Below are positions 9,510 through 61,396 of a stretch of DNA of 61,396 nucleotides, piece by piece. The translations under genes were made by a program, and so were the position numbers. How positions within the stretch are numbered: the first letter of the stretch is position 1; the number at the start of each line of letters is the position of its first letter. The notes under the pieces are model-generated. The model was not told the origin of the DNA and searched no databases. It saw only the letters and a program-made list of their open reading frames with translations. The stretch is taken from positions 1 to 61,396 of the forward strand of contig NW_026934719.1 of assembly GCF_032062105.1 (NCBI RefSeq), read 5' to 3'. This stretch comes from Saccostrea cucullata (lineage: Eukaryota).

Positions 9510-11213
9510 ATGGAGGATAAGTTACAAATACTGAAGTTCGACAAGCCGTGGTATGTTATGGTGGAAGACCATGAAATGTGTCAGGTAATTTCAAATTAAA
9601 TACTACATGCACGTGTCTCATGCATTCTAACACAAGAACAGTGTTTACAAACTTGGAGACTTTTTTGTCGTTTAATGACGAGTGAGTGAAATAGATCACA
9701 AATGCCCAGTTCAACGGTCAGTCATATTAGATTAAATCAAATATAAGCGCTCGAATAACTTAGTAGACCTTTCTTAATTTTCACTTGATGGGTTGTAGTT
9801 AATATTAAGCTGTCCTAAGTTTTCACAAGTATCGTGCAGAATATTCGAAAAGTATAGAGTGGTCTTTTGACCATCACCTAACTGTTTGACGCGATGCTGC
9901 ATGTCCGAAATAAATTGACAGTTTTCACTGTATGTTTACAGCTGTGTGTTTAAGAACAAAGCTTTTTTGTGAAGCAGATAGGTTCTACAGAGTACCAGTT
10001 TAGAATTGTAAATTCAATCAATTGATTAACATTAATTGTCGCATTTTCTTCATTCTAGAGCATTTTTGACGATCTTCTTGAAAAAGTGGATAGAGAGATT
10101 GCTATCAAAAACAAACTGGACGCTCTAATGGCAAGAGCGCAGGTATTCATATGTTACATGCCTTTGTATATTTATAAATTGCATTTTGATTGGAAATATG
10201 TCGATTTGGCAATTTTGTCTTTTCGATTCTGAACTGAAAAAAAAACTTTTATGTGTTTTAAAAAATATTTACATTAATTTTAGGAAAGGCAAAGGAGGTA
10301 TGAAATTCTCAAGTTTGATAGACCGTGGTGCGAAATGGTGGAGGAACCAGAAATATGCGAGGTAAGCACGGAAAATGAACGTTTTCATCAATGTGCATTT
10401 TTTAAGTTTTAATGCTCTACCAGAAATCTTTAAGCATGCGCTCAGTTGTATAAATACACCCCTTATATAGAATGTCAAACACTTTTAAATCGAAATAAAT
10501 GTATCCAATAAGTACATCAGTGTCGGACAACAATCAATTTACTTGACTTTATTCTAGGATATACTCGATGACTTGACCACGGGAGTGGAGACAGAGGATG
10601 ACACACGACATTTTAAACACGTGATGGCTACCGTTCTTGATGAGTTAAAGGTAGGTTGTCATCTGAAAATTTGCTTTAAAAACATTGTTATCTTTTTTTT
10701 AATGGAAGCTACAAAAATCTGCAGAATTGAGAATAATGTAGTTTGTGTTCAACTAAGTGACACAAAGGCAACGAAATGCAAAGATTTCATTTTAAATAAG
10801 TTATCTTTTTTTCCTCAAAAAATTAATTCCTTCTTTTTAGTCGAAAATACCCGTTCTTCAAGAACAAGAGACGACCTCGTTAAAGAAAGATGCTTCAATG
10901 AAAGACACAAACGCTGATATAAAGAAGACAGATAATACTTCTAGTGTCGTAAGTCTCTCACAATTTTACCCCCCCCCCCCCCCCCCGCCAATAATGTAAA
11001 GCAAATATTTAGAGATTTTATTTCTTAAACTATAACATTCGAATTAATCTGACTAATTGATTTTATTTATTTCTTTATTTTATTTTCTAACTTTTTTTCC
11101 CTATTTTCTTGCAGGTCACTCGTAGAACATTTTTCCAGAACATGAAGAAAAGGCTCCGCAAGATGTTCTTCAGTTGTTGTATGAAGCAAGGAGAAGACTG
11201 TGATACTTGTTAA
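9510..11213 (+). CDS. Array gene copy 3 (subtype A, spliced, 178 aa)
   Basis: Same exon set; ATG 9510, TAA 11211-11213. Confidence 0.87.
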
Positions 11214-18741: not shown

Positions 18742-20764
18742 ATATCTGTCTTTTCCTTCTTTTATTTGAACGATTTGTAATTTTTTTAAGCATTTGATAT
18801 TGTCCCTAAATATACACATTACCTACAAACCAAGTATTCAGTGTTGTGTTATTTTTTTAACAGTCTGAAAATTTCTTTTCCCAGTGGATATTGTGCCATA
18901 TAAGCGGTTATCCATGAAGAATCTTTTTTTCCTGCAAAATCTGGTATTTGGAGCGCCGGCAGAGTGAATAGGGGGAGCAAAAATAATACATATATAAACT
19001 GTGAATGATGTCATCACCAGAATGTTTTTGTGGGTGTGCACAATTTTCTAATATTGTTAAAAGATTGGACACTCTAAAATGCACCTTAAAACTGGTTTAA
19101 AAAATAATACAGTGTGAAATATTTAAGACAAGCGAAGATTTGTAGCATTGTATTAGCGTTTTTTAATTCGTAGATAACACGGTGGAACACCGACTTTGAT
19201 AATTATCGCAAAAGTTGTACAGTAACTGGGTCTCAACATAAATAATGTCAGTCCTACATATTTAGTTTTTGTTGACGTATACAAAGACCAATATATTGTC
19301 ATTGTTTTGATATTTAATTTTATTTTGTCATTTTCCATACACCAGTCAATGAATTAATCGTATAATTCTCAGAATATCAATATTACCCTTTTCTCCTAAC
19401 GCTGTACGTACGTAGAATATTTTTGTACATGACAAACCGCATCTGGGATCAAGACGAATTTTCAGGATATTGTAGTCAAAATGCTAAAGAAACTTTCTGA
19501 AAAGTTTGATTGTGATTGGTCCATGTACCTAGGAATTATAGATTTTATCGGCAAGAACTTCAAATTCGTCAGAGGTCAAAATTTCTGCATGAAGAAGAGA
19601 GAAACAAAATAAACCTTTTTATCTGGATTTTCTTCACATTTCATTGATGGCATTTGATTCCCCCGATATTATTTGATATTTTATTGTCATGTATTCATTT
19701 CTCATAATGTATGTGGAATTGATTTTAATTTTATTTCAAATAGTTTATCATGAAAAAATTATCGATTTTCACTTGATAACTAGTATAATAGCTGTGAAAA
19801 AAAAAAACAAAACAAAAACAAAAAAACTATGAAATAAAAGGATTATCGCTTTCAAAATAATCGAACTCGCAAGTCGCAACCTTTTTTTTCCCTACTTTTT
19901 TTCTTGCTGCAAGAAAGCGAAAGTAGGGTTTAAGGAGGCAGACATTGCTTGTGGCAGAAAGTTGTATAGAGAGGAAAATAGTTTAAGAAGACGGGATTGG
20001 TGTATAATAAATGTGTTGATATTTTGATAACCGCTTGGTTGAGGCGTTGAACACTTTGAATGAGTTGAAATAAATAAAATAAATATATTGAATGCGATTA
20101 GAACATACATAAAATGTAGAGCGAGCTTCTTTGGCACATTGCAAAGCCGGGGGTGGATCATAAGTGGTATATCTGGAAGGAAGGTCAAAGAAAAGGGGAG
20201 AGGGGGCGGGTTCAGATCTGCCTTATAGATATGGAAATTACTTTGCTATAGTATATGTTTCAAAGGGACCAAGTTCAAAGATATATGTAAGTTAGCGGTA
20301 TTGCAGTGTACATACATGTAGCATCATTTATGCAAACATTAGAGGACATATTGCACGGTATCTGCAGTCATTTCAGGGTTCGGCATGGAACGTTATGATC
20401 TCAAAGAGACACAAAACGTCACAATATCGATGACGTCATAAAAGTGAGATGTCATACTTTCTCAGTTGTCAAGAAACACTGTAGTGAAGGAAAAGGTAGC
20501 AAACATTTGGTAAGAATTTCCATAGCTTTTATTCTAAGAAATTTGTCCTTATTCTGTAAAATGAAGTAGAGAACCTGTTTCATATCTTCCAAATAATAGA
20601 AATCGACATGTTCCGTATATTCATTTATTCATTTTGACTTGACAATAAATAATTAAAAGGATGAAGAGAAGTGGGAGGGCGGTTGAAATGAAATTGCAAA
20701 ATAAACTTTTTTTTTCTCTTTTCTGTAATGTGAGATTTTATTTTTTCTTCTTATTTTAGAAAAC

Positions 20765-29934: not shown

Positions 29935-30694
29935 ATATCTGTTCCTGTCTTTCGTATTTGAACGATTTGTAATTTTTTTAAGCATTTGACATTGTCCCTA
30001 AATATACACATTACCTACAAACCAAGTATTCAGTGTTGTGTTATTTTTTTAACAGTCTGAAAATTTCTTTTCCCAGTGGATATTGTGCCATATAAGCGGT
30101 TATCCATGAAGAATCTTTTTTTCCTGCAAAATCTCGTATTTGGAGCGCCGGCAGAGTGAACAGGGAGCAAAAATAATACATATATAACCTGGAATGACGT
30201 CATCACCAGAATGTTTTTGTGGGTGTGCACAATTTTCTAATATTGTTAAAAGATTGGACACCCTAAAATGCACCTTAAAACTGATTTTAAAAATAATATA
30301 GAGTGAAATATTTAAGTCAAGCGAAGATTTGTAGCATTGTATTAGCGTTTTTTAATTCGTAGATAACACGGTGGAACACCGACTTTGATAATTATCGCTA
30401 AAGTTGTACAGTAACTGGGTCTCAACATAAATAATGTCAGTCCTACATATATAGTTTTTGTTGACGTATACAAAGACCAATATATTGTCATTGTTTTGAT
30501 ATTTAATTTTATTTTGTCATTTTCCATACACCAGTCTGAAACTTATTTTAACCTCCGATTTCAGTAGTCAAACGTCCGGTACTTCTCTTTGACGCTTTTT
30601 GGCTTTCAAAGTCTCTTAATATTTTATAATATTCAGATTTCTTCAGAAAACACACAATATCAATTTTAATAAAAAACAAAAATACAAAAGAAAA

Positions 30695-30805
30695 AGAGTG
30701 AAAGAGATAGAGTGAGAGAGAAAGAGAAAAGAGACACAGAGAGAGAGGGCACACAGTGGGAAAGAGAGAGAGAGGCACACAGAGGGAGAGAGAGAGAGAG
30801 AGAGA
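30695..30805. repeat. (GA)n-rich microsatellite in family-B intron
   Basis: Interrupted GA run; equivalent runs sit in the same intron of B2 and B3. Confidence 0.9.
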
Positions 30806-31189
30806 TTCTTACCCCTATGCTCTTTGTCGCTCTTCTGCTTCCTCACTCATCCTCTCCACATTTTCAAAGATGTCATCCTCTGTTTCAATGCTTCGTCTGA
30901 AACATTAATGTCGAAAATATTATATTAGAAACAAAGGAACAATATGGTTTTCAAAAAAAGGTAGATAAAAGAAATCCCAGGAAATAACTACAGAGTACCA
31001 AAAAATCATTTATTGCATAAAAATCATATTAAGGTAATATTACATTCAAACAAATCATATAAATGCATAATGTACATGCATCAGCAATTTAAAGGCTATG
31101 ATTAATTGCATTCCTGTTATATGCAAAAAATACAAATAAAAATGGTTATCTCAATCTTATTCACATAACAATAGTAAGTTACGAAAACA

Positions 31190-31490
31190 GATCGGGGGGT
31201 CGTGACTTTGAATCTCGGCCAAGACTGATTTAAGACCATAAAAATGGGCAGCAACTGTTCCCTCGGCAAGTGGAAATTGCGGGTCCTTCGGATGAGACCT
31301 TAAAAACCGAGGTCCCGTGTCAAGGCTGACGTTAGCACAATAAAGATCCCTTACTGCTCAATAGCCCTGAGTGCCCAAGTTAAGGTAAAAAAAAATTGCA
31401 GCCCTTCACTGATATATTGTGACATCTCTATATACATGAGTGAATTATTCTCGAGTAGGACGTTAATTAAACATACAATTAATCAATCAA
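31190..31490 (+). mobile_element. 5'-truncated tRNA-derived SINE with V-domain-like core
   Basis: Degenerate B-box-like start, core 'ttcggatgagaccttaaaaaccgaggtcccgtgtc...taaagatccc' and (TCAA)n tail. Flanked by a near-identical 10-bp direct repeat, tacgaaaaca / tacaaaaaca. Absent from the paralogous B2 intron near 41500. Confidence 0.8.
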
Positions 31491-34400
31491 TACAAAAACA
31501 AAAAGTTTCTACATTTTCCTATAGCTTTAAATTATATAAATGAAAGCAAATTATGTAGATCTTAATATTGTCATAAAACTAAAATATAAAGTTTATAAAG
31601 TGATAAAGTATCACGTAGTATGTCTGTGATAACCACAGTGAGCTGACTTAGCAGAAATCCTGTGGATAAGGTATAAACCAAGCACGGCAACGCTGAGGGC
31701 GAGGAGGTTCATCTGCTAAAGCATGTAAGAGCAGTGACACCACAAATACAAATAAACTTAATACCTGAGATTATCAATTTTGTTTCTTTCTCAGTTTTTG
31801 TCTTGAGTTTAACACAAACAGGAACAATTTAATGCGTCATGTTCTTGAGGAGATATATTTTGCGTCAGTATAACATAGCATGCTATGACAACACAGTATG
31901 ATACATGTTGTAATAATGAATTGAGCATTAAAAAATATAAAAATGTCAGTGTAAATATGTATTAAGAAAAAAGCAAACATATAGCTATTAAGTTTTTGTT
32001 ACAGTAGATTATTTCTTAGAAACTGAACTTCTTCATATTTGTAATTGAACAAGTTTAAGATTTAAAGAATCTAGGTATGTATTTTTTGCTAATTTAATAC
32101 AAAAAAATGAATATATATACCTTAAAAGTAAACATTTTGGTCCCAGTATTTTCCCTTAAAAAAGAAAATCTCACAAATCTACAAATAATATTTCTGTAAC
32201 TGTGGTTATATAAATATCAAGATCTGAATATGCATACACGAAACTTTGTTTTTAACTGTTTTATCTTATATATAAAATTCTTGAAATTAAAAAAAACACT
32301 GTGATATTTAAACGCCATTTCTGTCAATGGTCAATTAGAATTAGAAAAACTTAAAGTACGAAAGCAATAGGTTCAGTAGAGTGAACAAGTGGGTCAGAAT
32401 AAATTTTCACATCAGAAATCTCTTATGTATGAATGTCTACAAAATAGAAAAAAATCAAAATATGCGACAAAAAGAAAGAACATCGAAGAAAAAGCCATTG
32501 ACGACTTGGACTTCGACTGAATAGAAAGACATTATAGATATTTATAAAAGGCGGATTTCAAGTTTATGTTCTATATCAAATTCATGAATTAAATTGAAAC
32601 AAATCTTGTATATGTTCAATCTGCTCTAGCAGTTAAAAATTGATACTAAAAATTACAGCTCTTCAATGGTGCTGTGCGCCATTACGAACTCCAAAACATT
32701 TGTTCTTGATGATAAAAATGATAATTGAAATGCATAGCGTTAATATTTACGGATTGAAAAAGTGCCCCTTTCCTTTACAATTTTAAAGTAGAGTTAAGTT
32801 TGTGATCAGGCATAAAAACTGCTTTGAATGCGGACTTTACCCTCACATTGACCAAGTCAAGGGCATGTAAAAAAAAAATCTGAAAACTTTCCTTTTCATG
32901 ATTGTTTTCATTGCATCCAAACGCTACAAGTTATATATACCTTCAATGTATTATCTTGCTGCTAACACTTTGCAGCGATTACTTATTTAATTTCTAACTG
33001 TTTAAAAGACGTATAAACGAGCCGTTTTTAAACTCAGTAAGTATTTTGTTTGACCAGGATTGAAAACTGAGACGTCAGAGCAATGGCGCACAAAATATGC
33101 AAATTGAGAAATTCAAACATTGATTCGGTAGTAAAACATCCAAAAAAAAAAAAAATTTCCTGGATAAGAATTTTCATGGAGAATTTTAACAGCCTGTAAA
33201 ATTTTTCATATGAAAAATCTATCAGACATAATAACAAAAATTATTATAATAATATTTCACGTTAAAGTTTAAACCTTTAGAGAATCAGGGATCAGTCAAT
33301 CAAATCAGGGTTTTTATATTAATTATCATTTGTAACATATGCGGAGTGGTTAATGCGTTCGCTCTAGAGTCGAGCTGTGAGGATATACCAGGGTCATTCA
33401 AAAAATACGTAGACAATGTCCTCCATCATCATATTATTCTTACAAAATTTTAGATCAACACATTTTTAAATGTAAAAACATTTATTTTATCAGTAAGTAA
33501 AGTTTCATTATCGTGTTAGACAATTTTAAAAGTAACATGTTTTGTCACCACGAAGCACGGTTAACAACACTGTGACGTCAAAAACAAGATTTTTTTCTTA
33601 AAATTACTCTGCCTTTTCATTACATCCACGGTTTGTTGCTTCTGAATTCATGAATCTATAGCCCTTTACACCTAGTTTGCTAACAATTGTTTGAGTACCT
33701 TACGTTAAATTGTCAATGTTTTCAAATTCTTCATTGCGTAACTCCCCGCAAAAGCGAATCGCACATCACGTTTGATGACGTTACTAACTCTTTGACACGA
33801 CTTTTTACTATAACTTGTTTTTTTCGCACACCGTTCATGGTCCGATTCCTAGTTTAAACAATAGTCATTCCCATTATAAACAAATGCATAGCACATTTTT
33901 ATCTATTTCCTGGTTTACCAAGATGTTATGATATTATGTTATTATGATATTATAAAAATAGTACAACATAATCTTTATGTCAAACTGCAATATGCAGCAT
34001 TTGAAATAAGAGTCAAAATAGAACACATGAAAAATGAAGTACAACTGCTATTCATTCCCTAACTTAAAAGCTAAACTCAAAAATGTTCCAAAATTTCAAA
34101 GCTTAGAAATGTTTTGTACGCTCAGTTATTGAACTAATTTGAAAATTAATCATTAATTAAATTAATAAAATTAAAACTAATTAATAATGCGAATGTTTTT
34201 TTTTTCGTATTAACTTTTAATATTTACTCACCAATTTTTGGTAAGAAGAAAATATCATGAGTGCAGATAAATCATTGAAATGTCTGTCTTAATTCATTGA
34301 AAAAACAGCCATTTATCTTCAAGGGCATACATTTTACTAAAACTTGTTAAAATGGGTTTAGGCTGCAGCAACAATCTAAAGTCGAAGTTTCGAGTTTGAA

Positions 34401-35993
34401 TACTGGTGTATTCAATAAAATGATGAAATACATATTTATTCCTTCACTATTGCTTCTCCAAGCAATGACAGCAGGGTCACATTGATAAGTGAGTTACCCG
34501 GTTTTCTTTCGGCATTCTCATATACTAATTTTTACTATGAAAAATGCAGTTCTGTACATGATCGATACAGCGGTCTTGAACACGATATGCGAGATCAAAA
34601 GTTGTTAACTTCAACTAGGTTCTGAATAACACGTTTGGGGATTTTTCAGTGATTTTTTTGTTCCTTTTATGATTCCCTATATATTCTATTTACCAATAGG
34701 TCGCTGTAGATCTGCAGGAAAAAAAAATAAATTATACATTGTTTGTCTTATTTATGCACGATTTACTTACATTATTCGACGAGTTAAAAATATTTGTGTT
34801 ATTTAGTAAGAGAAGGGGAAATCAGGATAAAAGTATAGGTCTTGCGTGGAATAGAACGCAAGTCCTCTGCAATACATACATGTAAGATGCACGTTGAGCT
34901 ACATGTACTCAGTATGATAAATGCTGTACAAAACCAAAACACTGCCACATTTTAACTTCTGATTCATATTGTCTTTAAATACATATATTTTTTGGTTTTG
35001 TATGGGCTTATTAATTAAAATATAATCCCCCCCTTCCCCCAAAAAGAAAAAGGAATCCGAAGGAAAAACGAATAGATGAGAGAAGAACGAAAATATAAGC
35101 TTGGGCGGGAAATTTAACACGAGGCTCCTGACTTTTACTCAGTTGTTTCATCAGGGAGCTATGGAGACTGATTTATTTACGATTCAAAGCCTTATTTAAT
35201 CTTCTAGAGCCGTAAAAGGAAAATTAATGTAGATATAGGTACTAAATGTCGGTCTAAGACTTTTTTGACGATGAAAATACACAAATGCAAATTATCACGT
35301 ACTCCTCTGACCGATATCATAAGATAACATAACGCATGTAAGTTCAGAATTTATATTCAGCAGAATATGAAATGATACCTAATAGCGGATATAATTAATA
35401 TTCGCGTATAAAACATTTAAAATTATTTAATAAAACAACAGCTTCCCGGATATCCAATAATTTTATGCATTGCATATCTATAGTAATGCATCGAAAAGCT
35501 ATAACATAAACAAAAAATGGTATTTGAAGAAAAATAGTAATAATATGCATGCAAAAATATCCAATCCTTTTTTGATCCCTAATTTAAATGTGATTTGTAA
35601 TCAACTTAAGTTGAAAAAAATATAGTTAAAGTGCTCCAATTTTCAGTAATGTTAAAAGTTACCTTTGGCAATATTCAATTCATTTTTAACATGTTCCCAG
35701 ACCATGTGGTCTATATGTTGTAAAAAGTCCTTTCATTAGTCATAGAGCAAACTCAAATTGTTCTTATTCTCAGCAAAAATATATTAAAACTTTTCGATTA
35801 AAACCTGTTTTTACATTGATTTTCACATTTTGCGTAATAAGCATGTAATACTGTACCTTCCAGATGCTGCATGTGTCATAATATAAATATAATAAACTCT
35901 GTTCATTTATGCTGACTGATATTTATTCCACTGATATCCCTATGCGAAAAGGTAATCTATATACAGTATTTGACCGCATCTCCAGGTATATAG

Positions 35994-36493
35994 ATAATAA
36001 TACATACCCTTTTCCACATCACATCCTGTATCAGTCCGAGACACCAATATCAGCCAGAGGGCTGATATTGGTCAAGGGCTGAAACAGGATGTGATGTGGA
36101 AAAGGGTTTGTTTTATTATGTTTATTACATACTAAGTAATCATGCACGGTCTTTTTTACATGTACAAATACACGGTCTACTGTCTCATACGGTTTTGGTT
36201 TGTTTCTACTTCTATTTCAAATGTACTTAATCCGTAATTTGAAAATATAATCTTTTATATGTCAATTCGATTATCCTTACATCCGAAACGCTTTAATAAA
36301 AAAATTATGTAACCTCAAACTATGTGTATGATCACAAGTACTGTTTTTGAGGTTTAAATAACTAGGGGGTGATATAGATCCGTATCAGCTCCGCAAATCC
36401 ATATTACTTCCTTGAGGGCTGATACGGCTATTGTGACGTCAGGCATATTGCATATGCAAAAATTCTGTTTGTATTACTAAGAATGTAATAAAT
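35994..36493. mobile_element. Non-autonomous element with a-a'-b-b' inverted-repeat layout (Crypton-like)
   Basis: A ~125-nt hairpin at 35994-36119 (cccttttccacatcacatcctg...aatatcagcc agag ggctgatatt...caggatgtgatgtggaaaaggg) abuts a second IR pair, 36121-36140 and 36473-36492 (18/20 match). Family assignment is from architecture only. Confidence 0.6.
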
Positions 36494-36561
36494 AGAGATA
36501 TTTCATTTTGAAAGAGAAATAAATGCATGTACACACAAGTATATCAAATGATTTCTTGTAG

Positions 36562-37489
36562 ATGAAATCGGTATTGTTTATGGTTCTCCTGTTGGTCCTC
36601 TATTGTGTGATGGAAGCAGAAACTACCACCACCACTTCTTCCACCACTACCACTTCTACCAATTCTACCAATATTACGATCCCCGTACAACGTTGTCGCT
36701 GTCGTCACCGATGGCGTTGGTGGCGTTTGCGATGGCGATGGTGTCGCTGCTATCGCTTTCTCAGAGTGAGCAAAAATATCTTGTCTCATTTTTCTCATTA
36801 TATAAAATCTCACAGTTATCTAATTTAAGTACAATGTGCCTATGTTCTCAATACAACGTTACTAAAAGGAGAGGCAAACAAATCATTTCTTAAAATTTGA
36901 AGGTGATGATAAAGAAATTAGAAATTCATTCAATTGGATAAAAAAAAAATCAGGGCAATGGTGCATTATTATTTTAAAAGGTAAAATGATTAAAAGTGAC
37001 ATGTAAATTTTGCATCTTGAAATGAAAAATATACTCGCGAAACGTAACAAATATGTTTTGAAAGGAGAAACAATTTTTTTTTTCTGTGATATGTATAGTA
37101 ATATTAAATAGATACATAGTGATACTAAAATAAGGCGGCATTCAGTTTGATCAAATCAAAATTTATATGTTGGAATAAAGGTCATTTAACTATTTTATTG
37201 AAGAATATTTCGATTTAAAAGTATTTGACCCTTAGATATATGATTTCTTTTCCTTTTTAAATATGTAAATATTTTGTTCTTATTTAAATTTTATTGAAAC
37301 AAAGAAGAGGAAAACATAATTTTTGCATCAATCTATAATAGTTTCAAATCTTTTGGCGCTATGTTTTCTTTTTCAATTTTTGTTTCTAAATTCAGAAGAA
37401 ATACATTTAAACTTAACAGTATTCATCTTTTTTGTTTGTTTATTTAGATGGACAAATTATCCGACACAGAGCTCGAATCAGCTGAATAG
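36562..37489 (+). CDS. Family-A gene A1: 81-aa secreted precursor of an Arg/Trp-rich CxC..CxC hairpin peptide (candidate antimicrobial); exons 36562-36765 and 37448-37489
   Basis: ttcttgtag|ATG, then MKSVLFMVLLLVLYCVMEA (signal-like) ETTTTTSSTTTTSTNSTNITIPVQRCRCRHRWRWWRLRWRWCRCYRFLR|gtgag ... tatttag|MDKLSDTELESAE*. AATAAA at 37540. Same exon layout as A2. Confidence 0.85.
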
Positions 37490-38323
37490 AATTCCCTATC
37501 TTCCAGAGAAATGCTTTCCTGGTTTCTCAAAGATTAAAAAATAAAAATGTTGGCTTTTTTCCATTCTGGGTTTATTTTGACTGAATCCGTATACAAATTG
37601 GTTATAAATGCAAGGGTCAAAATGCAACCCCAAAGTAGGTTATTGTTTCTGACAAGGTCATAATTGTACCACCATGGAATTTTGAAATGTGAATTTAAAA
37701 ATTAAGCATGAAAATTAAAATCAGCAGTCACATTATAGGTCGCATATGAAAGGGTTTGCACATGGATCTTGAACATGCTTCGAAGTATTGAATGGGTTGT
37801 GAGACGTCTTCAGTATACACATGTGACAGATGAAGATAACGCAATAAATAGGGAGACTTGAGTGTAGAAAGAGCGATTTAATCTAGTAAAGTCATTATAG
37901 GTGGTCCTTTTGGCATGTTACCTACAATAATCAAAACAATTCATGAATATAAAAAAAAACTAATCATACATAAAATGAGATTGTTTGTTTGAGGTCCTTG
38001 AATGGTTTCCAATCAACCGTGAGGATGACATTGACACCTATTTAGTTGTAGCCTTAGTACCACAAAAACTGCTATTAATAGAGTAGGTTATCATAATCAT
38101 TACATTAACCATCAAAATGAAAGACACCGATTGCACAATTTGAATTTTTGAGCAAATCAACTTTACTTTTCTGTTCCCTTCACTGGCGCATGAGTGAGCC
38201 GTTTAACCAACTTTTTCGGTGTGTTTACCCGTAGCCCAATATAGCTTGAGTTTGTCAAGACTTTCTCGCAAACGATCACATTTACCCATTCGAATAGTCT
38301 TCTTAAGGTTTATCTTTTACTTA

Positions 38324-38916
38324 CTGTATAGGGAATTAATTTCACGGGTTGTAATTTTCACGTTTTTCTCTCATCTGACAAGATCGCGGTTTCTTGAATT
38401 CGTGGAATTGGTACATAATAAAAGTTACCTCCCTTGTCTATATCCATTTATCCATACCATAGCTACATGTAAACGATATTGATAATCAGTGTTATGACTT
38501 TATTTCACGAACAACAGGGTTGGTTTAAATAAAATAATTAGATTTGATATAAAAAAAAATTGACGATTAATTAAAACAAGTGCGGTTATCAAAAATCCTT
38601 GACTCTAGACATCAAATGTCTTTCCTATATGCTATTACAATGAGTGCGTGTACACCCTAAGATCTTCGATACAACGCAACGAAAAAGCACTGGACGTAAA
38701 GCGTGATAATTAAATTAATTGAATGACGAGTACTACTCGTAATTACCCCGAAATCATGTTCATGTACTGAGTTATGTAGAATGATTGTTATTAACTCAAA
38801 TTCCAAATAAAACCTGGAGATTATGAAAATTTATTCACTGTTTCAAATACAGGGACATTATTAACACCGTGAATATAGCGAATATTAACACCGCGAGTTA
38901 TTTTCCCCCTATACAG
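38324..38916. mobile_element. Tc1/mariner-type MITE with TA target-site duplication
   Basis: TA|ctgtataggg ... ccctatacag|TA terminal inverted repeats. The paralogous site near 58290 is empty with a single TA (atcttttacttattgaacatctgtggg). Confidence 0.88.
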
Positions 38917-39169
38917 TATTCAACATCTGTGGGACAGAGTGGAAGATAAAATTTTGATAACTCTTGAAATATGAGACAAAATCAAATGGGATTTGGGCTA
39001 CACTTACAGTAAAAGAATTTAAACTTAAGATAAGAAAATTTGAATTTTCATATGGAAAAATAAAATTTTAACTAAAAAAATTACCCTGCTTTTTTTTCTT
39101 TTAATATATATATGGATATTACGAACAGTATCCAAGCTCAAAAGACCTTCAAACAATAAAAAATTGTAG

Positions 39170-39930
39170 CAGAGCAATCACAGATCCTCAAAATATCAGA
39201 GGTTGGATAAGGTGCCATGGAGGAGTGAGCATCCCCTGGCATGCTCCTTGTCATGATCGATAAATAACGAAAAACCATTTGTCAATTCAGTTTGTAAATA
39301 ATGGTCTTAAAGTCAGTATGAAAAACGCTAGTAAACATTTAGCTTAGAAATGTAATCGCTGACAAGATCATTGTATGGACAACAGAATTTTTAAAAATGA
39401 TAGCACAAAACGAGAATGCTGATATTCTTGTTTCACCAACTTGTTTGTGAAAAGGTAAAGTCATTTTAGAAACTGTCCATAGGTAGAGCATGTTCTTGTG
39501 TATATCGAATCAACTGAGATATCAACACAGAATGCAGGTGATGAAGTTAAATTGCTGCATAAGTAAGGGATGTTGACAATAAAAAATTGTAAGTGATCAC
39601 TTTAATCATAAACTTAAATTGTTAGATTACTATTAATGTCTTTTTCCGTTAAGTGTCTCAATATGAAACAGATGTGTGAGACTAGGGAATCTTTTATTTC
39701 AAGCTCACTTGGATATGTCGTTTTGATTTTAGAGGTGAAATAACCATTTTTAATTGACAATACGTCGTCGATATATCTTAATGTCGAGTTGAAAGCCATA
39801 GCAAAAATTTTCTTCTTTTCATGTATAAGATTTTGGATAAATTTTGCTTCAAATGAATACAAAATAGGTCTGCTAACAACGGGGTATAATTGGTACCAAT
39901 ATTAATGGAATTCTAATAGAATATTGGAAG
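39170..39930 (-). mobile_element. Decayed 5'-truncated Penelope-like retroelement (RT C-terminal part)
   Basis: Reads GTNYTPLLADLF...YSFEAKFIQ...FNSTLRYIDDVLSI...YPSELEIKD, containing the RT YIDD motif, with frameshifts and stops. Confidence 0.85.
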
Positions 39931-40322
39931 ACGTTCAGTTGTGTGTATTATGTTCAATAGCGTAGCTGCTAACATAAAACATAAACCAAGATTTTGAATG
40001 GGCATCTAGACTATCTCTACGTAGGGTGAGTTTGCATAAACATTTGATGCTAAGTACCAAATCCAAGATGGCTACCTAAATAACGACATCGGTATTTTAA
40101 CAAAATAGTATAGGGAACTATTTTCTATATTTAAGGGATTGAAATACCGGTAGTTAACAAATATATTTCCAGTGGAAATAAACAAGTTCTGCTCAAAAAT
40201 AAATTTAAATAGATATGTTTTTTTTAATCTGACACTCGGCTTAGATAGCTATCCGTTCAATAGAGACAAATATCTACCACAAAGCTGCTAAGTTATCCTC
40301 TACGATCTTGAATGGAGCCTTG

Positions 40323-40522
40323 AGGCCGGTTTTACAAAAGAACTTACAACTAAGACCAAAAACTTAAGTTGATTGTTGAATTTTGCCAAATGTATTATTC
40401 TCTTTCAAATTGCCAGCTTTAAAACATATTTCTAGATTCCCTTTTAAATAGATTAAAACATTTTCAATTCAATGTAAATTAGAAAGTAACAAGCAGAACT
40501 TAGTGTTGGTCTTAATCGTACG
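40323..40522. mobile_element. Small MITE remnant, right end truncated
   Basis: About 200 bp present here but absent at the paralogous site near 60595. Inverted pair tacaactaagacca / tggtcttaatcgta. Confidence 0.6.
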
Positions 40523-52271: not shown

Positions 52272-55200
52272 GAGGAATTATAGTTTATAATGCATTATTA
52301 AGAATATTTATTTGCAATTAAAAGATAACGGAGTAGAATTTACTTTTCCGTAGAATTTTAAATGTAATATACAAAATTTTAATTGCTAATTGCAACTTTT
52401 GGGTACAGCACCGCCTTCTTACACAAGAGAATGAAAGGCAATATTTAAATTTAAATAGGGCTAATTTATGTAGTTATTCGATATTAAGTTGTACAAGCAA
52501 TGAGTGTCATCATTCATCTATTTCAGTTCAGTAGCTCCATTATTATATAGCTCAAACATCTTCCATTATATTATTAATTGATTAAATACTACAAATAAAA
52601 TTTGTATCGGTATTTCAGGTAACCTATGCCCTGTTCGTGTTCAATATTACATCAATCTAATGACCCTAGAAACATTATGAAATGCTTATTGATGCTATAT
52701 AAAGGCTAAAATGTATAAATTCATTAATTATGTAATAATTTTGACTTACGTGAAAAGAGACGCAGCTGTATAAGCTTCCACTTTCTATCAAAAATTTGCC
52801 TTTGACTTGAGAGACTAACCAGAGAACATTTTTGTTTACAACGGGGCGTTCCATATGTAACGCTCGTATTTGAAATACCTTGGGCATACTCATATAACAC
52901 GTACTTTGTACGTAAAACAAATTTATCGTTTTGTAAAGCACCAATATATTGAATGCGAAAATTATTTCGCGTTTTAGTATAGTTTTTTTTTTTATTATCA
53001 ATTACAAGTACTTAACTAGCAATACATGTATAATATAAATATTTTATTTTTGCTCTTCCATGTTTGAAAATGAAATTTGAAACACTCTTTTATGGAGATA
53101 TTTCAGACTGAAGTATTTCTAATAAAGTCGGTCAAGTTAAGCCGTTTTTTAGATGTTGATGGAATAGACTTTCGATGAATGATGTTCTAATTTGCGCTTA
53201 ACTAATAATGCATAATTGGTTCTGAGGTTATAGAATTGATTTGATGAACAAGAAGATTCGATCAAGTACACGTCATGCAAAATTGAGACAAATAAGCATT
53301 TATTAATTCATATTAGATATCATAAACTCATAAACCTTTCTACTTGTTTGTAAAAGATCCTATACTTATTCATTATACATTTTAACAATCGGAACTACTC
53401 GAACCTTGCAGGCTAGTGGAAAAACAATCTCAAATGCTTTAAGAAGACGCCATAACACCCCACCCCCCATTTTGCACGATCTTTGATATAAATGCATGGA
53501 GACCTTTTATATGTGAAATATGAAGTTTAACTTTATTTATTGTAATGATATCACCAAAGATATACAATAGAAGGGACATCTAAATCCTTTATTCTTATAC
53601 AGGAAATATAAAATTTTTAACATCTGGTGATGTTAATACATTCAAGATTGTTTTCCGACCTCTAACGGAAAGATCCGAGATGAGGTGATTGACAATTTAA
53701 TAAAAAGGAGTTGCATCAGGTATTATTCCACCTGTATATCTTTAAAGTCTTTTCAGGTATTAAACTTTTGTATTTTTCATGAATTGATTGCATACGCAAT
53801 GTCCAAGAAGCAAATTTTTGAAAATGGACATCTCAGATAGTGTAAAATATATTCTGAATAAAATGTCGGCAAGGTTCCCCAAATTTTGAAGGAGATTAAT
53901 ATATAACAGTTTTGATTTTGTTTAATAAAATTGTAATGTTTTAATCGTATTGAATCAAACGTTTTAATGACCATATTTGTCCTGGTAAATGGTTGACCTG
54001 ACACCCCTTACAAATAGAACACCCTGTGTGTATATAGACTCGGGATGTTGTGAATCTGTGTCTTTCTTGTAAACGTTATGAGGGTGAAGAAGCTGTATAG
54101 TAAGTAACTAAGTATAAGGGTCAATTAAGGGTTCTAAGTGTTAGGAAAGATAAGAAGGCGATCAATTCAGTGGCCCGAATAGAGCTGAAGCTGCTTTGGT
54201 TGTCTGTGTATCTTATTATTTTCCTTGGTGGTCGTCCACTGTGACTGACCATAGCACTGACAAATTCAATCAGGAAAAATAGCTACTGTTGGGGATAGTG
54301 GCCCGAATAGAGCCGACCTGTCTCTGGAACTAGTCTATTTAATTAGGACACATAGCAGTTACTTATTGAAGGTCTTCCATTTATTTTTGATTCACTTCTT
54401 GATTTAACCCAAGGTAAGGACATTCAAATATATAATATAAATCTAATCAGTGATTGACGAAAAGTATTAGTTTGTCAGGCAAAGATGTTCTTACGAACTC
54501 GTTATAAAGATTGACGGCAATATAGTGCCGTTACACAATCAAAGTTGACAGTTTTGTTTGAATCAAAATTTTCATGTTTTATGTTCATTGAAATTAACTG
54601 GTTAAACTTGCATTTAATATTCTTCAACAGAGATTGTGATTTGTACATTTATTCATCTGATATATAATGTACGAGCTAAGAAAGCAATCGTTTGATAATT
54701 GCATAAATATATGTTATGTCCTCTCATCTTAAGTTGTTCGCTTATTGTATCCATGCACTCATTGGCACTTCATTGTATCTTTACGTAAATTCATGTATTT
54801 TTGTTTAGACAACCATATTCTCATAATGAATGTAAAAAGCTATACTTTTCAACGAAATGAATCAGTAAGCAACTGCTTTTGAGATTTTTTTTTCAACAAA
54901 ACTATATCATCATATGAACAGAGCAAAATCGTGGGAAGGGAGGCAATCTGATTTTGTTAAATATCAACCTTAATACATTATTATTTCGTCAACTTTTATA
55001 CCCTATAATCAATATTTACACTGTTTTTTGATTAGTCATTGAAAACTGTACCTACGATTGCTGAATAAGGACTTTGAACCCTTTCGTGATCTTTTTGGGG
55101 TTTTTATTTCGGATATGTCCTACAGTTTGTATAGACTTGTGAAATGAGACCAATCAGATATTGTAGTCGTATTAGTCGGCAAACATTCCATAAATCCCAA

Positions 55201-57419
55201 CCAGAACATTAAACAGAAAGTTTACTTCGAGAGGTTTTGATATTTTACATGTTAGATCACAGCACAGTTAAGGTTACAAATGGAAATATAGACGATTTCT
55301 TAAGATAAAAAATATATATTTTACTAGGATGGGCGATTCTTTTTAGGACTTCACTGATATCGAAAAAAATGAAATGTGGTTTAAATCTACATGTTGGGGA
55401 CATTTAGATTTTTTATTAAGACTTGCCACGTGATGGCGACGTCACATGATTTTAGCAATTATATTTGTAGTTTAGAGGTCATTTATAAATTCCAATATTG
55501 CAAGTGCATAACCAAGTTAAATATCTCATTTTCATTTATAATCCTTTTCAACACTATATGTAGTTTGTGAAAAGTGCTGCGAACCTATATACATTCTCTT
55601 TTTTAATTGCTAAACTTTAATTTGTTGGACGGCAGGTTGGATATTTTGCTGGTCAACTACATTAAATGTAGCTATAATTAATTTATTTGCAAGATTTCAT
55701 GAGGTTAGCAGCACTTTTCGTACATCTTAATGCTTCTTGAGTTTATGTGTAAAAACTTGACAAGATACATTGATAGTATGGCCTTGCAATAAATCGATTT
55801 ATTAGGACCCTTCCATTACTTTTTCAATGATTCTGCATACAAACACACGACAGTATCACTTGTCTGGAGAACGTACGGACAGTTTATAAATAAAATACTA
55901 AAATAGACATCGCATCCAAGTTTACGGCCTTTTATTTAAATGCATAGAATATTTCATTTGAGAAAAAAGACATTTTCATTGTTTCAAATGTGACTTGATC
56001 AGCTTTCACTGTGTACAAACTGCACCATTTTTGCGAGAGGACGTCACATTGACAAGTGCATTGCGATCGATGCATCGTTTAAAAACTGTTGTGTGGAATT
56101 TAACAAACGACAAAACTGCATGTAATAGTAAGTTTGATTGTAGTATACAGCTATCCAGCTGTTTGAAATAGCAAATGATTTCATTTTGTGGTATTTTGAA
56201 GACCTTATATTATGTGTGACGTCATAGTAAATATTTCCCGTACAAATTAGGCCCCGCCTCCTTACTTTAACCTTAACTGTGCTGCGATGCTACTCTGCCA
56301 AATAATTCTTTAAACAAAGTATTTGTTTTTCTATAAAATACAGCAGGGTTCTCCATCATTTGAAATTTAACTGTGGCGCAAGAATTTCCCGAAGTACTGA
56401 TATTCGCGGTCATTTTACGACCAATTCACGAAGGAATCACAAATTAAATTGAAAAACACACAGCACATATGCATCCATATTCCAATACAAATAACATTAT
56501 TTTTTTGGCAAAATGTTTGATGAATTTAAGAATAATAATTTAAAAAATGATATCGTTTTAATTTAGTGTAGTGATATCGTTTTAACATAGTGTAGAACAA
56601 AAATTAAATTATTTCCACAATATATTAACTCTGAATTAAAGATCCCCCCTTCCTAAACACACATAAGAACTAAATAAAGAGATTTTTGCTTATAGAATCA
56701 AAAAAAGTATCAGTCATAACAGGTTTTAAGTATTTAACCCTAATTTAATAAAAGATTGTTTTCAAAAGGTAAATATACACATGCAATGTTCATTAAATAT
56801 CGACAGAGGAAATTCGGGTATGTTACATTAAAAACAGAAAGATGTGGGAGAGTAGTGAGAACGACAACTCTGTATAGAGAATAATTAGACCTATACGATG
56901 TTTTGACTCTCGGCGCAAATGTAATGTTCGAGACATTGTTAACTGTAAAACTATTTAAGCATGAACTAATTTATATTTTAAATTGCCTTTGTAATTATCG
57001 TGAAGTGTGAAAAAACGGCTTCCTGTGTCCAGCGAGGTCTCAGAGATAATTGATTGTGCAAGCCAAACAATGGGCCCTAATTAGAGTAAATTTACAGATT
57101 AGCATTAGAAACTGAAATCGGTACATAGTTAGTATGTTTCAAAATTATTATTATGACAAAAAGGTCATTTAACTATTTTATTGAAGAATATTTCAATTTA
57201 AAAAGTATTTGACAGTTAGATGTATGTTTTTTTTTTCTTTTTTAGATATGTAAATAGTTGGTTCTTATTTAAATTCTATTGAAACAAAGAACAGGAAGAC
57301 ATTATTTTTGCATCAATCTATAGTAGTTTAAAACTTTTTGGCGCTATTTTTTTTTTCATTTTTTTTCTAAATTCAAAAGAAATACAGTTAAAATTATTCC
57401 TCTTTTTTTGTGTATTTAG

Positions 57420-57461
57420 ATGGACAAAATATCCGACACAGAGCTGGATTCAGCTGAATAG
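57420..57461 (+). pseudogene. Orphan terminal exon of a family-A gene (A3): MDKISDTELDSAE*
   Basis: Acceptor tatttag is intact and the exon is paralogous to 37448-37489. I found no signal/hairpin exon in 49-57 kb, and AATAAA is changed to GATAAA. Confidence 0.65.
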
Positions 57462-58499
57462 AATTCCCAGCATTCCAGAGAAATGTTTTCCTGGTTTCTC
57501 GAAGATTACAAGATAAAAATGTTGGCTTTTTCTATTCTGGGTTTATTTTGACTGAATCCGTATACAAAATGGTTATAAATGCAAGGGTTAAAATGCGACC
57601 CTAGAGTAGGTTATTGTTTCTGACAAAGTCATTATTGTACCATTATCTAATTTTGAAATGTGAATTTAAAAATTAATCATGAAAATTAAAATCAGCAGTC
57701 TGATTATCTATCGCATACGAAAGGGTTTGTACTTGGATCTCAAGCATGCTTCTAAGTATTAAATGGGTTGTGAGACGTAATCAGTATATGCACGTGACAG
57801 AGGACGATTACGTAATAAATAAGGAGATTTGAGTGTGTAAAGAGCGATTTGATCTGGTAAAGTCGTTAGTTTGTCCTTTTGGCATGTTACGTACAATAAT
57901 AAAAACAATACATGAATATAAAAAGAAACTTATCATACATAAAATGAGATTGTTTAATAGAGGGCTTTGAAAAGTTTTCAATCAACCGTGAGGATGACAT
58001 TGACACCTATTCAATTGCAACCTTAGTACCACAAAAACTGCTATTAATAGAGTAGGTTTTCATAATCATTACATTAACCATTTAGATGAAAGAAACCGAT
58101 TGCACGATTTGGATTTTTAAACTGATCATCTTTACGTTTGTGTTCTTCTCATTGGCGCATGAGCGAGCAGTTTAACTTATTTATTCGGTGTGTTTACCCC
58201 TAGCCCAATGCAGCTTGGGTTTGTCAAGACTTTCTCGCGAACAAGCACATTTACCCACTGGACTAGTCTCCTTAATGTTCATCTTTTACTTATTGAACAT
58301 CTGTGGGACAGAGAGGAAGATGCGGTTTTAATAACACTTGAATTTTGAGGCAAAATCAAATGGGATTTGGGATACATTTACATTTTAAAATATTTAAGCG
58401 TAAGATAAGAAAATTTGAAAATACATATGGAAAATGAAATTGTACACCTAAAGATTTTACCCTTTTTTTCTTTAAGTAAATATATTCATTACGAACGTT

Positions 58500-59270
58500 A
58501 TCCGAGCTCAAAAGACCTTCAAACAATACAAATTTGTAGCAGAGCATTTACGGACCTGCGAAATATCAGAGGGTGGATAAAGTGCCATGAAGGATTGAGA
58601 TTCCCCTGTCAACCGGTCACACCCGCCGTGTGCTCCTTGTCATGATCATAAAAAACGTCACCTAACATAAATTTTAGCTTAATGATAAATTGTAATCGCT
58701 GACAAGGTCATTGTATCGACCATAGAACTAAGAAAATGATAACTTTAGACGAAACTGCTTATATTCCTGTTTTTTAAACTTAATTGTGAATAACTAAAAT
58801 CATTTTAGAAATTGTTCGTACGTAGAGCATGTTCTTGTGTATATTAAATCAACTGAGATATGAACCCTGTATGCAGGAGATGAGGGTAAACTGTTGCATA
58901 GGAAAAGGATGTTGACAATTAAAAAGTTTCAGTTATCACTTTAATCATAAACCTTAGTTGTTAGATTACCAAAAAGATCTTTTTCCGTTAAAATATCCAA
59001 ATATGAAACTGATGTGAGAGACTCTGTGGTATCTTTTATTTTAAACTCACTTGGATATATCGTGTTCATATTAGAATTGAAATTACCATTATTAATTGAC
59101 AATACGTCGTCCACATATCTAAATGTCGGGTTTAAGGTCACAGCAAGTGTTTTCTTCTTTTCATGTATTTTGGATAAATTTTGCTTCATATGAATACAAA
59201 ATATATTTGCTCAAGTCTAGGCGCAATTGGTACCAATATTAATGGAATTCCAATACAATGTTGGCAGACG
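58500..59270 (-). mobile_element. Decayed Penelope-like RT remnant (duplicate of 39170-39930)
   Basis: ORF 58941-59189 reads TFRYVDDVLSINNGNFNSNMNTIYPSEFKIKDTTESLTSVSYLDILTEKD...LTTKVYD. Confidence 0.87.
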
Positions 59271-59513
59271 GGGGAGTGCGTTCAATAGCGTAGCTCCCAC
59301 GTAGCCGAAACGTGTAGCCACGATCTTAAATAAACAGCTAGCCTAGCCTCTACGTAGGGTGAGTTTGCTTAAATATTAATGCTTAGTACCAAATCCAAGA
59401 TGTTAAATTACAACATCGCAACACACTCGATTTTAAAAAAAATAGGGTACTATTTTCAACATTATAGAGAGTGAAATAGAAATTAACACACTAGTATGTA
59501 TAAAAATACATAC

Positions 59514-60458
59514 ATGTCCAAGAACGAATTCGATGTCGATATCAACGATATCGAAAATTTTATGTCGATATCGTATCGATATCGATCGTGATCAGCACTA
59601 TTAATTGGAAATACCTGGTGCCAAATTTGAGACACTATATTACGTCGATGTCGTCGATATCGACGATATCATGACAATATCGTATCGATATCGATCCTAT
59701 TTGCATAATCTATCTTCACATTGAGGTATAACATTATTTTACAAAGTCAAAAGTGAAGTCAAAATTGATTCATTATTGGCATGAATATGAAAATAAATTA
59801 TGATTAAGAAATTTTTCAGGTTGTTATTGTTTTAGATTAGATTTAGAGTAAGATGTTGGGTTAGGGTGAAAATTCTTGAAAATGTTTTAACAATCATGAT
59901 TCGATATCGATACGATATCGTCGATATCGACGATATCGAGAGTAAGGTAAACTTATTAAACACAGAAGTCTTGTAAAAATAAATTTCTTGTATTAAGGTG
60001 AAGGTTGGTAAAATAATATGCTTTTAACAATCATGTTTCGATATCGATACGATATCGTCGATATCGACGATATCAATGGCAGGTAAAATCTTCGTAAAAG
60101 GAAAGTAATTAAACATAAAACATTCAAAGTAGCAGGGAAGGTATAAACAAAGGTTGAGCGAACATGATTCGACATCGAAGCGATATAGTCGATATCGACG
60201 ATATCGACACTTCAGGGAAAGATTTATAAAGAATGTTTTAAGTAACAGTTGTTAAAAACAGCATATAAAGGATGGAAACCATAATTCTTGAAACAATCAT
60301 GATTCGATATCGGCACGATATCGAGAACACTAACAGTAAGAAAATAGTCTTAAAACAGGAAGCATTGTTATAAACACACGAGAATAGTGAAATATTATAG
60401 AAAACTATAAAAAAAAAAGTCATGTGTCGATATCGTAACTACATCGTGTCTTGGACAT
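59514..60458. mobile_element. TIR element with internal arrays of palindromic GATATC/TCGA motifs
   Basis: Ends atgtccaagaacga / tcgtgtcttggacat. About 7 clusters resembling cgatatcgatacgatatcgtcgatatcgacgatatc, in both orientations. Absent from the paralogous position near 40150-40195. Confidence 0.8.
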
Positions 60459-60905
60459 AACTCTAAAAATAAGTTTAAACAGAAACGTTTTTTATCAAAA
60501 ATCTGACACTTGGCAACTTAGCTAGCTCTCCGTTCGATAGAGACAAATATCTAACATCAAGCAGCTAGATTAGCCTCTACGATCTTGAATGTATTCCTGG
60601 TCTCCAAAACACAACATAGATATTGTCAAGCAGAAAAGATTAATGACCAAGTCTTATAATGCAGATATTTTTATTTCATTTTCAACAGAAATGTTAGAAT
60701 GGTTCCTTTGTATGTCCTTCATTCAACTAGTTCCCTATGACTACAAAAAAATTAATGAAAGTTAGTCTGATAAGTTGAAAAACATAATAGTATGTTGAAT
60801 GAATGAGTAAGAATAAATTAAAATCTCAAAACTTCAATAAATAAAAATTACTCAAAATATAATATATGATTAAGGAACAATGTAACGTCCAATTTGCTAC
60901 TTACT

Positions 60906-61286
60906 TTAAGCTTCAATTTCAGTAGTCAAATATCCAGTGCTTCTCTTAGACGCTTTATGGCCATCAATGTCTCTTAGTATTTTACGATATTCAGATTCCT
61001 TAAAAAACAAAATGCACAATATTAATTCAGATAGAAGAAATAAATACAAGATAAAGGGAAAGACTGAGAAAAAATGAGAGATAAAGAGAGACAGAATGTG
61101 TGAGAAAGAGTAAGAGAGAGGCGGTGAGAGAGAGAGGGGGGGGGAGTCACAAAGAGAGAGGGAGAGAGACACCCAAATCCACACACACCCTTTCTTACCT
61201 CTACACTCTTTGTTTGTCTTTCCTCTGCTTTATTACTGCTCCTCTCCACTTTTTCAAAGACGTCATCGTCTGTTTCAATGCTTCTT
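60906..61286 (-). CDS. Family-B gene B3, 3' coding exons only (61286-61199, 60998-60906); 5' exons would lie beyond the window
   Basis: RSIETDDDVFEKVERSSNKAEERQTKSVE|ESEYRKILRDIDGHKASKRSTGYLTTEIEA*. The 88-nt and 93-nt exons have intact splice sites, and a gtaagt donor lies 1 nt after the stop. Confidence 0.78.
61064..61190. repeat. GA-rich microsatellite in B3 intron
   Basis: Direct observation. Confidence 0.85.
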
Positions 61287-61396
61287 CTGAAACATTTATG
61301 AGGAGAAAATATTAATAGAAACAAAGTGCTCAGTAATATTATGGTTTTCCAACAAAGCTGATGACAGAAAAGTAAGAATGATTCCTTTGTATGTCC

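Follow-up and report, generated by a model that had tools for sequence, protein, structure and literature searches.

The 61,396 bases analysed here (the window) are the whole of contig C16856 in the 1.17-Gb assembly of the oyster Saccostrea cucullata; labels of the same type, such as C23659 and C22316, denote other contigs. This region forms the end of a larger gene cluster for small secreted peptides, in which members of two families, A and B, are interleaved. An earlier note made from the sequence of the window had proposed the order B1 pseudogene (minus strand), A1 (plus), B2 (minus), A2 (plus), A3 fragment (plus) and B3 (minus), and all six elements were found in this arrangement by reading of the sequence, comparison of exons with the window and self-comparison. 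Strands, exon borders and pseudogene states were also as described there, except for three corrections that concern the start of B, an exon of A2 and the cysteines of B. A and B are genuine small secreted-precursor genes in a conserved cluster. Every exon is flanked by AG and GT, the intron following the cysteine exon is in phase 0 in both families, and both possess the acidic C-terminal exons ascribed to them (a separate last exon in A, the acidic exon in B). Family A is represented in the window by the following elements (nt, nucleotides; aa, amino acids; KR, Lys-Arg):

35880..35951, plus strand: promoter-proximal block of A1, with a TATA-like element at 35880-35896, a non-coding first exon ending at 35951 and the donor GT at 35952
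36562..36765, plus strand: main coding exon of A1, 204 nt (68 codons), with the ATG right after TTGTAG and a phase 0 end at GTGAGC
37448..37545, plus strand: last exon of A1; coding part 37448-37489 for a 13-aa acidic tail (MDKLSDTELESAE) and the stop; AATAAA at 37540-37545
48140..48262, plus strand: main coding exon of A2, 41 codons, for a signal peptide and a CxC-x5-CxC module
48738..48773, plus strand: middle exon of A2, 36 nt, 12 codons ending in KR, shared by four paralogues at 94-100% identity; the TTTCAG and GTAAGT flanks are conserved
48950..49032, plus strand: last exon of A2; coding part 48950-48982 for a 10-aa acidic tail; AATAAA at 49027-49032
57420..57461, plus strand: A3 fragment, the last exon of an A gene alone, 93% identical to the A1 last exon

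The main exon of A1 encodes a signal peptide, a 24-aa Thr/Ser-rich linker with NST and NIT sequons, and a 25-aa CxC-x13-CxC module that is extremely rich in Arg and Trp (11 and 5 residues of 25, respectively; net charge +11). The first intron occupies 35952-36561, and a conserved block is located about 600 nt upstream of the ATG. This block and the AAAAG/GTAA donor (35951/35952) are kept in the paralogue A4 and in both A genes of Saccostrea echinata, which indicates that the placement of the ATG directly after a splice acceptor, claimed in the earlier note for both families, is real for A and is associated with a non-coding first exon, while for B it did not hold (see below). The position of the A1 transcription start is a predicted one. 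A C/EBP-like motif, TTGCGTAAT, is present at window positions 35831-35839, about 45 nt upstream of the A1 TATA-like element and inside the block conserved with A4 and S. echinata; being a match to the consensus only, it could hint at immune or acute-phase type regulation.

Comparison with the S. echinata A genes demonstrated that the middle exon of A1 has decayed: its acceptor and donor are gone and a stop is present, so the main exon of A1 must join the last exon directly. The genome contains an allelic copy of A1 (94% aa identity) and the paralogue A4, which is 63% identical to A1 and has a Trp-rich CxC-x12-CxC module. For the mature parts of A1 and A4, the ratio of non-synonymous to synonymous divergence (dN/dS) is about 1.5, based on small counts.

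The A2 gene (48140-48982, plus strand) had been regarded as a two-exon gene for a 51-aa precursor; alignment of the paralogues exposed an overlooked 36-nt middle exon, which extends the precursor to about 63 aa. The genome holds three further A2 copies, in which the exons are 92-100% identical with no indels, while intron 1 is only 68-78% identical with many indels. Within the mature core of these paralogues there are no non-synonymous changes and three synonymous ones. Decay is evident in some copies: in A2b a Cys has become Ser, the frame is shifted and a donor is weakened; in A2d the acceptor is gone; and A4 shows a 1-nt shift where its exon ends.

Family A is retained in a second species of the genus. 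In each of the two B loci of S. echinata (L027 and L030), an A gene lies about 6.4-8.7 kilobases (kb) downstream in the tail-to-tail arrangement shown by A1 and B2 in S. cucullata. These genes encode an intact signal, a Thr-rich linker and an Arg/Trp-rich CxC-x11-CxC module, followed by a middle exon of 27 nt with KR at its end and a last exon coding for 13 aa of acidic tail. Between the two species, dN of A is 0.22 and dS is 0.80 (dN/dS of about 0.27), while in the mature part dN is 0.20 and dS is saturated; all these values are derived from small counts. Alignment with S. echinata persists mainly in the A and B exons; further aligned blocks are the B2 upstream/promoter region, a single intron segment and some stretches resembling repeats. 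A regular expression describing the A design (Met, hydrophobic start, CxC, loop, CxC) matches only A1 and A2 within the 61-kb window and has no matches in about 140 kb of other scanned loci; the remaining matches are family members or a new gene on C23659. Judged by sequence, family A consists of real genes, conserved as intact exons beside B in S. echinata. The possibility that A is an internal exon of a larger gene was considered and rejected.

The large protein collections were searched with the A1 and B2 exons as queries, and the family databases with single exons and with full-length B. No word-sharing protein was found for the A1 exon in a collection of 5.8 billion proteins, which does hold the RefSeq protein of B2 from the same contig, and family A therefore appears to be unannotated; in S. 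echinata, the A gene is absent from the called genes of its locus. The expectation that standard annotation would miss these genes thus appears to be borne out for A but fails for B, since B2 is the RefSeq “uncharacterized protein LOC134241216”, and S. echinata, Crassostrea angulata and Ostrea edulis all have annotated homologues. Searches of the A exons against Pfam (E up to 10), NCBIfam, PDB sequences and the ESM Atlas gave compositional noise only, for example New_glue owing to the Thr run.

The B genes are arranged in the window as follows:

30541..31712, minus strand: B1 pseudogene, with a remnant of the signal/Cys exon at 31590-31712 containing TGA and TAA; the rest of the Cys exon and the next exon are deleted
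43543..43557, minus strand: upstream mini-exon of B2, 15 nt, with the start codon (MASLK), in frame and followed by a 1.1-kb intron
42246..42422, minus strand: signal and Cys exon of B2, 59 codons, with ASA/H followed by a Tyr/His-rich C-x12-C-x4-C-x10-C module that has an NST sequon at the turn
41674..41747, minus strand: third coding exon of B2, 74 nt, phase 2 end, with a conserved NG-x-x-LYY segment and RRTK
41100..41187, minus strand: acidic exon of B2, 88 nt, opening with the base that finishes the Lys codon of RRTK; directly after it comes the codon for the R of the RTKR site
40828..40911, minus strand: fifth coding exon of B2, 28 codons (ESEY...TTEI), followed by a GTAAGT donor
60906..61286, minus strand: B3, 3' half only, with the acidic exon at about 61199-61286 and the last coding exon at about 60906-60998 (stop at 60906-60908), both open

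The exons of B2 (gene span 40828-43557, minus strand) translate piecewise to the RefSeq protein P0014 with AG/GT flanks, and their borders are thereby confirmed, including the splitting of RTKR over a junction; the RefSeq protein has one residue beyond the fifth coding exon, derived from a further exon. S. echinata retains the mini-exon, and the RefSeq proteins P0008 and P0014 both include it. Translation of B consequently begins five codons earlier than had been proposed, in the MASLK exon and not at the ATG after the acceptor. In B1, the 3' part retains an acidic exon at about 30823-30896 with a 4-nt deletion and a last coding exon at about 30557-30640, while the 5' half of B3 lies past the contig end (61396).

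Two features of the B introns may be mentioned here. Upstream of the B2 signal exon, the 55 nt or so that adjoin the acceptor have a direct repeat about 85 nt farther from the exon; this second copy has no AG-ATG (window 42423-42640, minus strand). The intron located 3' of the B2 acidic exon contains a (CT)n microsatellite, which fills most of the intron between the acidic and last exons in B2 (40983-41088), in B1 (30763-30805) and in both S. echinata genes (L027:14343-14390 and L030:14366-14415), that is, at the same place in both species.

Homologues of B2 include LOC133178836 and LOC133176421 of S. echinata, LOC125673455, LOC125673456 and LOC130052643 of O. edulis, LOC128182079 and LOC128182080 of C. 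angulata, and genomic open reading frames (ORFs) from an ENA assembly. A phmmer search with the B2 exon against 1.84 billion proteins yielded E = 5e-21 for S. echinata and 7e-4 to 9e-4 for C. angulata, O. edulis and the ENA sequences. B2 is 68% identical to the full-length S. echinata protein and 32-39% identical to the C. angulata and O. edulis proteins. The relatives are 147 aa in length, compared with 60 aa in the single-exon query; the exon plan is shared where it was checked, and the exon blocks align with the S. echinata locus L027. Every relative is named “uncharacterized”, no paper naming the LOC numbers of the LOC134241216 family was found in the literature, and full-length B has no Pfam match (E up to 1) and no NCBIfam or PDB relative. 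The database check for a match to a characterised family thus returned only these uncharacterised homologues of B, in agreement with the statement of the earlier note that the cysteine spacings are unlike those of bivalve defensins, big defensins, mytilins or myticins (no Pfam, NCBIfam or PDB family was matched). On these alignments, B is a slowly evolving family distributed across Saccostrea, Crassostrea/Magallana and Ostrea.

In an alignment of nine B sequences, the invariant columns are C31, Y33, H34, N45, Y52, Y53, Y57, G58, C60, G64, N75 and Y80. Among the invariant residues are the NxT sequon's Asn, placed where the turn is predicted, and one Gly and one Asn in the next exon. The ASA/H cleavage motif is conserved as well. 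The description of B as a four-Cys family is correct for B2 and fails for the family, since the inner pair is missing in the S. echinata and C. angulata sequences and in at least one from ENA, and the outer pair alone is invariant. The joint replacement of the inner cysteines in three lineages, with the outer ones unchanged, suggests pairing of outer with outer and inner with inner, as in a hairpin ladder. The processed product had been taken to be a 36-aa cationic peptide; however, conservation extends through the next exon to RRTKR, so this product would be a Tyr/His-rich domain of about 55 aa, which is probably glycosylated.

B genes are tandemly arranged in the other genera. C. angulata (L029, CM046779.1) has two B genes just downstream of a MUC4-like gene with NIDO, AMOP, VWD and C8 domains (L029:1-820). 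O. edulis (L028, OX387706.1) has at least three tandem copies in 10 kb (positions 10001-20100), one of which is apparently broken by stops in the signal/Cys exon.

The pseudogenes, the gene fragment, a 4-kb segmental duplication and the differences between haplotypes support the proposal that this is a birth-and-death cluster. The features on which the wider picture depends are:

37156..41297 and 57139..61396, no strand assigned: the two copies of the segmental duplication, 74-86% identical, which gave rise to A3 and B3
C23659 at 27324, 31053, 89383, 98833, 104215 and 112649; C9250 at 74841 and 231531; C14384:45167; C7733:25184; C14915:3057: related exons elsewhere in the genome (loci L035-L048)

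The breakpoint of the duplication (37156/57139) falls within an A intron. Both copies contain reverse-transcriptase remnants with the motif RY(I/V)DDVLSI (39614-39862 and 58941-59189, both on the minus strand), which are also found in the S. echinata locus L027. The terminal part of contig C23659 represents the alternative haplotype of window 30537-37291 (92-98% identity); this contig carries A4 about 6 kb upstream of the B pseudogene, where the window has a 3.75-kb tandem array. This array (window 1-30300; period of about 3.75 kb, eight copies, periodic GC skew) was not found on the stretch of C23659 searched (100000-123883), a difference that represents either structural variation or an assembly problem. 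Contig C22316 is the other haplotype of window 47854-58782 and runs on to a complete B gene and then to another A2-like gene head to head with it, which means that the cluster extends past the window. Presence/absence variation within the cluster is probable, with assembly error as the alternative.

The new A-design gene revealed by the regular expression is located at C23659:112649. Genome searches with an exon query and a profile revealed about 11 related exons, five of them on C23659 besides that at 112649. Most have six cysteines in a CxCxC-x4 to x7-CxCxC arrangement followed by KKR or RKR. Among these 4/6-Cys relatives, the signal is 68% identical while the mature part outside the cysteines is 41% identical. 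Of the seven loci checked, three to four have in common a KR-containing middle exon (EQIAKRFPQPDD-like) and a final acidic exon (LEDL...LRD); a TGA occurs in one copy, and two pairs represent identical haplotig copies. An hhalign comparison between the A genes of the window and the 4/6-Cys family gave a probability of 6%, which leaves homology unsupported; on gene plan and linkage, a relationship between them is possible.

Several known systems resemble family A in part. Protegrin-1 has the spacing CxC-x4-CxC and two ladder disulfides, and the peptide encoded by A is likewise short and Arg-rich, with a loop between two CxC motifs (CxC-x5-CxC in A2). Unlike the protegrins and other cathelicidins, A lacks a cathelin pro-domain (there is no Pfam match), only the signal and the Thr-rich linker precede the peptide, and an acidic tail follows it; A also has no amidation signal, its A1-type loops are Trp-rich and 11-13 residues long, and it shares no sequence similarity with protegrins, which come from unrelated animals. 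The tachyplesin precursor consists of a signal, a cationic hairpin with the spacing C-x3-C-x4-C-x3-C, a Gly-Lys-Arg (GKR) amidation/processing site and an acidic extension. The plan of the A precursor (signal, cationic two-disulfide hairpin, basic site, acidic C-terminal extension) is that of tachyplesins and polyphemusins, but its spacing is CxC-x5/11-13-CxC, it has no GKR, and it is encoded by a multi-exon gene with a separate tail exon. The rhesus theta-defensin RTD-1, an Arg-rich 18-20-mer, has the spacing CxCxC-x4-CxCxC in a three-rung cystine ladder, and theta-defensins are formed when two nonapeptides, derived from alpha-defensin-like precursors of truncated genes, are ligated head to tail into a cyclic backbone. 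The six-Cys relatives on C23659 (not the window genes) share the cysteine spacing alone with them, while in each of these oyster genes a single exon specifies the complete ladder, after which come KKR and an acidic tail.

A 2026 review describes the protegrin class of beta-hairpin peptides, the BRICHOS-derived hairpin family and the three disulfides of theta-defensins (PMC13001179). It recognises only 25 natural disulfide-cyclised beta-hairpin antimicrobial families and none that is natural to molluscs, which are represented solely by laboratory fragments of larger proteins, myticin C and myticodefensin (PMC13001179). A differs from the BRICHOS-derived peptides (arenicin, capitellacin, alvinellacin), whose precursors contain a BRICHOS domain, in its precursors of 63-81 aa with no Pfam domain. 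Closer in gene plan are the myticalins and modiocalins, antimicrobial peptides of mussel gills encoded by multigene clusters with pseudogenes and presence/absence variation (PMC5577615). A shares with the myticalins a non-coding exon 1, an exon 2 that opens with the ATG and holds both the signal and the whole mature peptide, a KR site after that peptide, and a last exon for the anionic tail. Myticalins, however, have a linear, Cys-free cationic mature peptide (PMC5577615, PMC12294457), a phase-1 intron and tails of 35-75 aa, and are restricted to mussels (PMC5577615), while A has four cysteines as CxC...CxC, a phase-0 intron and tails of 10-13 aa. No significant similarity was found between A and the published myticalin signal consensus, and assignment of A to the myticalins was rejected because of its four cysteines and its phase-0 rather than phase-1 intron. 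Bivalve defensins, big defensins, mytilins and myticins were rejected too, since A has four cysteines and B two or four, not six to eight, and no Pfam match was obtained. A literature search on Saccostrea antimicrobial peptides or an oyster “cystine ladder” returned nothing relevant.

From these gene structures we infer how the two products might be secreted, processed, folded and used. In A, a short non-coding first exon would be spliced to the ATG-initial exon for the signal, the optional Thr-rich linker and the CxC-loop-CxC module, then to an optional exon of 27-36 nt ending in Lys-Arg, and finally to the last exon for an acidic tail of 10-13 aa. The signal peptide would be removed (AlphaFold predicts hydrophobic N-terminal helices at residues 2-24 and 3-23 in the two families), the Thr-rich linker is probably glycosylated, and the two CxC motifs would pair as a two-rung disulfide ladder (C1-C4, C2-C3) forming a beta-hairpin. 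A convertase and a carboxypeptidase may then cut at the basic sites, freeing the acidic tail. The A1 type (+11, Arg/Trp-rich) would act as a membrane-active host-defence peptide. B, with at least five coding exons, would have a signal followed by the domain of about 55 aa, rich in Tyr and His, carrying the N-glycosylation sequon and predicted to contain beta-strands; the invariant outer disulfide would close this domain, with the furin-type RRTKR site over the splice junction and an acidic/basic tail following it.

To the reading in which A comprises unannotated microgenes, with host-defence hairpins of the A1 type, and B is the LOC134241216 family with a role less likely to be antimicrobial, we assign an even chance. 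The antimicrobial role of A is suggested by composition, which makes the A1-type peptides good candidates; together with the two-rung cysteine pattern and the acidic tail, this composition is typical of membrane-active beta-hairpin peptides of host defence. For B, we consider a classical antimicrobial role less probable than for A. Several observations weigh against this reading. No RNA run is listed for window 36500-42450, although this does not mean that none exists. A1, without a KR middle exon, has no dibasic site on either side of its hairpin, the AlphaFold confidence score (predicted local distance difference test, pLDDT) is below 50 for its module, and a simple strand-register analysis yields no clean amphipathic hairpin. 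A2 is mildly cationic (+4) and conserved rather than diversifying. No A-like exon was detected within flanks of about 10 kb around the B genes in O. edulis or C. angulata, and none on the ENA contig. As for B, AlphaFold predicts three strands for B2 at low confidence (pLDDT 64), the support beyond sequence consists of RefSeq models only, and conservation in three genera, the N-glycosylation sequon and the richness in Tyr fit structural or carrier proteins as well as defence.

That the A frames are chance or decaying ORFs and not expressed genes, as their unannotated status, the lack of a listed RNA run and the decay of A2b, A2d and A4 might suggest, we consider highly improbable: S. echinata keeps intact exons, splice sites, the 5' exon and poly(A) signals at a dS of about 0.8, and among the paralogues the exons are far more conserved than the introns. 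A might alternatively be secreted without being antimicrobial, acting as a signalling, gamete-recognition or toxin-like peptide on a stable hairpin scaffold. The strictly conserved, only weakly charged A2 core would suit such a role, and KR sites with acidic spacers are also typical of neuropeptide precursors. We nevertheless regard it as unlikely, since the Arg/Trp richness of A1, A4 and the S. echinata orthologues is a hallmark of membrane-active peptides, no amidation signal is present, and the 4/6-Cys relatives combine a conserved signal with a variable mature part, as antimicrobial and toxin families do.

The suggestion that both families are host-defence genes, each freeing a cationic disulfide peptide from an anionic pro-region, agrees with the plan found in both (signal, basic Cys module, dibasic site, acidic tail) and with their linkage in two species. 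It is improbable in view of the B domain, which spans the next exon, contains an invariant N-glycosylation sequon and about 11 Tyr, has a modest net charge and, at 35-39% identity across three genera, is not hypervariable in its mature part. Quite possible, if short of an even bet, is that B is a conserved secreted Tyr/His-rich oyster glycoprotein without an immune function: it could cross-link shell, periostracum, ligament or cement through Tyr/3,4-dihydroxyphenylalanine (DOPA), bind metal in the plasma, or resemble a prohormone, with signalling peptides in its tail. The invariant Tyr, Gly and Asn positions and the conserved NxT sequon, the dispensable inner disulfide, the MUC4-like gene adjoining the C. 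angulata B genes, and the conservation of the C-terminal exons, with several KR sites, between Saccostrea and Ostrea are all consistent with this. On the other hand, family searches gave no similarity to known matrix, adhesive or neuropeptide families, some of the C-terminal KR sites are not conserved in Ostrea, and in Saccostrea B is tightly interleaved with the antimicrobial-like A genes.

A broader version of our favoured reading, in which A1-type hairpins serve host defence and B does something else, can be offered tentatively and with more doubt than belief. It supposes a Saccostrea cystine-ladder superfamily that unites two-rung hairpins (A1, A2, A4) with three-rung CxCxC...CxCxC ladders having theta-defensin spacing without cyclisation. 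Such a superfamily would be the first natural mollusc class of beta-hairpin antimicrobials, with some members placed on a mucin-like glycosylated stalk, and it would be inherited as conserved A-B pairs in which the Tyr-rich B could serve as a partner or carrier.

With respect to what was known before, B is already annotated yet unstudied, whereas A looks like a new class of mollusc antimicrobial hairpin peptides; more cautiously, the sequences suggest that Saccostrea possesses, in A, a candidate family of beta-hairpin antimicrobials that is neither described nor annotated. The example demonstrates that microgenes with 60-80 codons spread over three or four exons are missed even where a genome is well annotated. 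B is an uncharacterised Tyr-rich secreted family of three oyster genera that is now defined for expression and knock-down studies. If A is expressed and active, it would represent a new natural family from oysters offering very short scaffolds that are easy to synthesise, among them an extreme Arg/Trp hairpin and a ladder with six cysteines, and this would be relevant to the design of peptide antibiotics and to the disease resistance of oysters.

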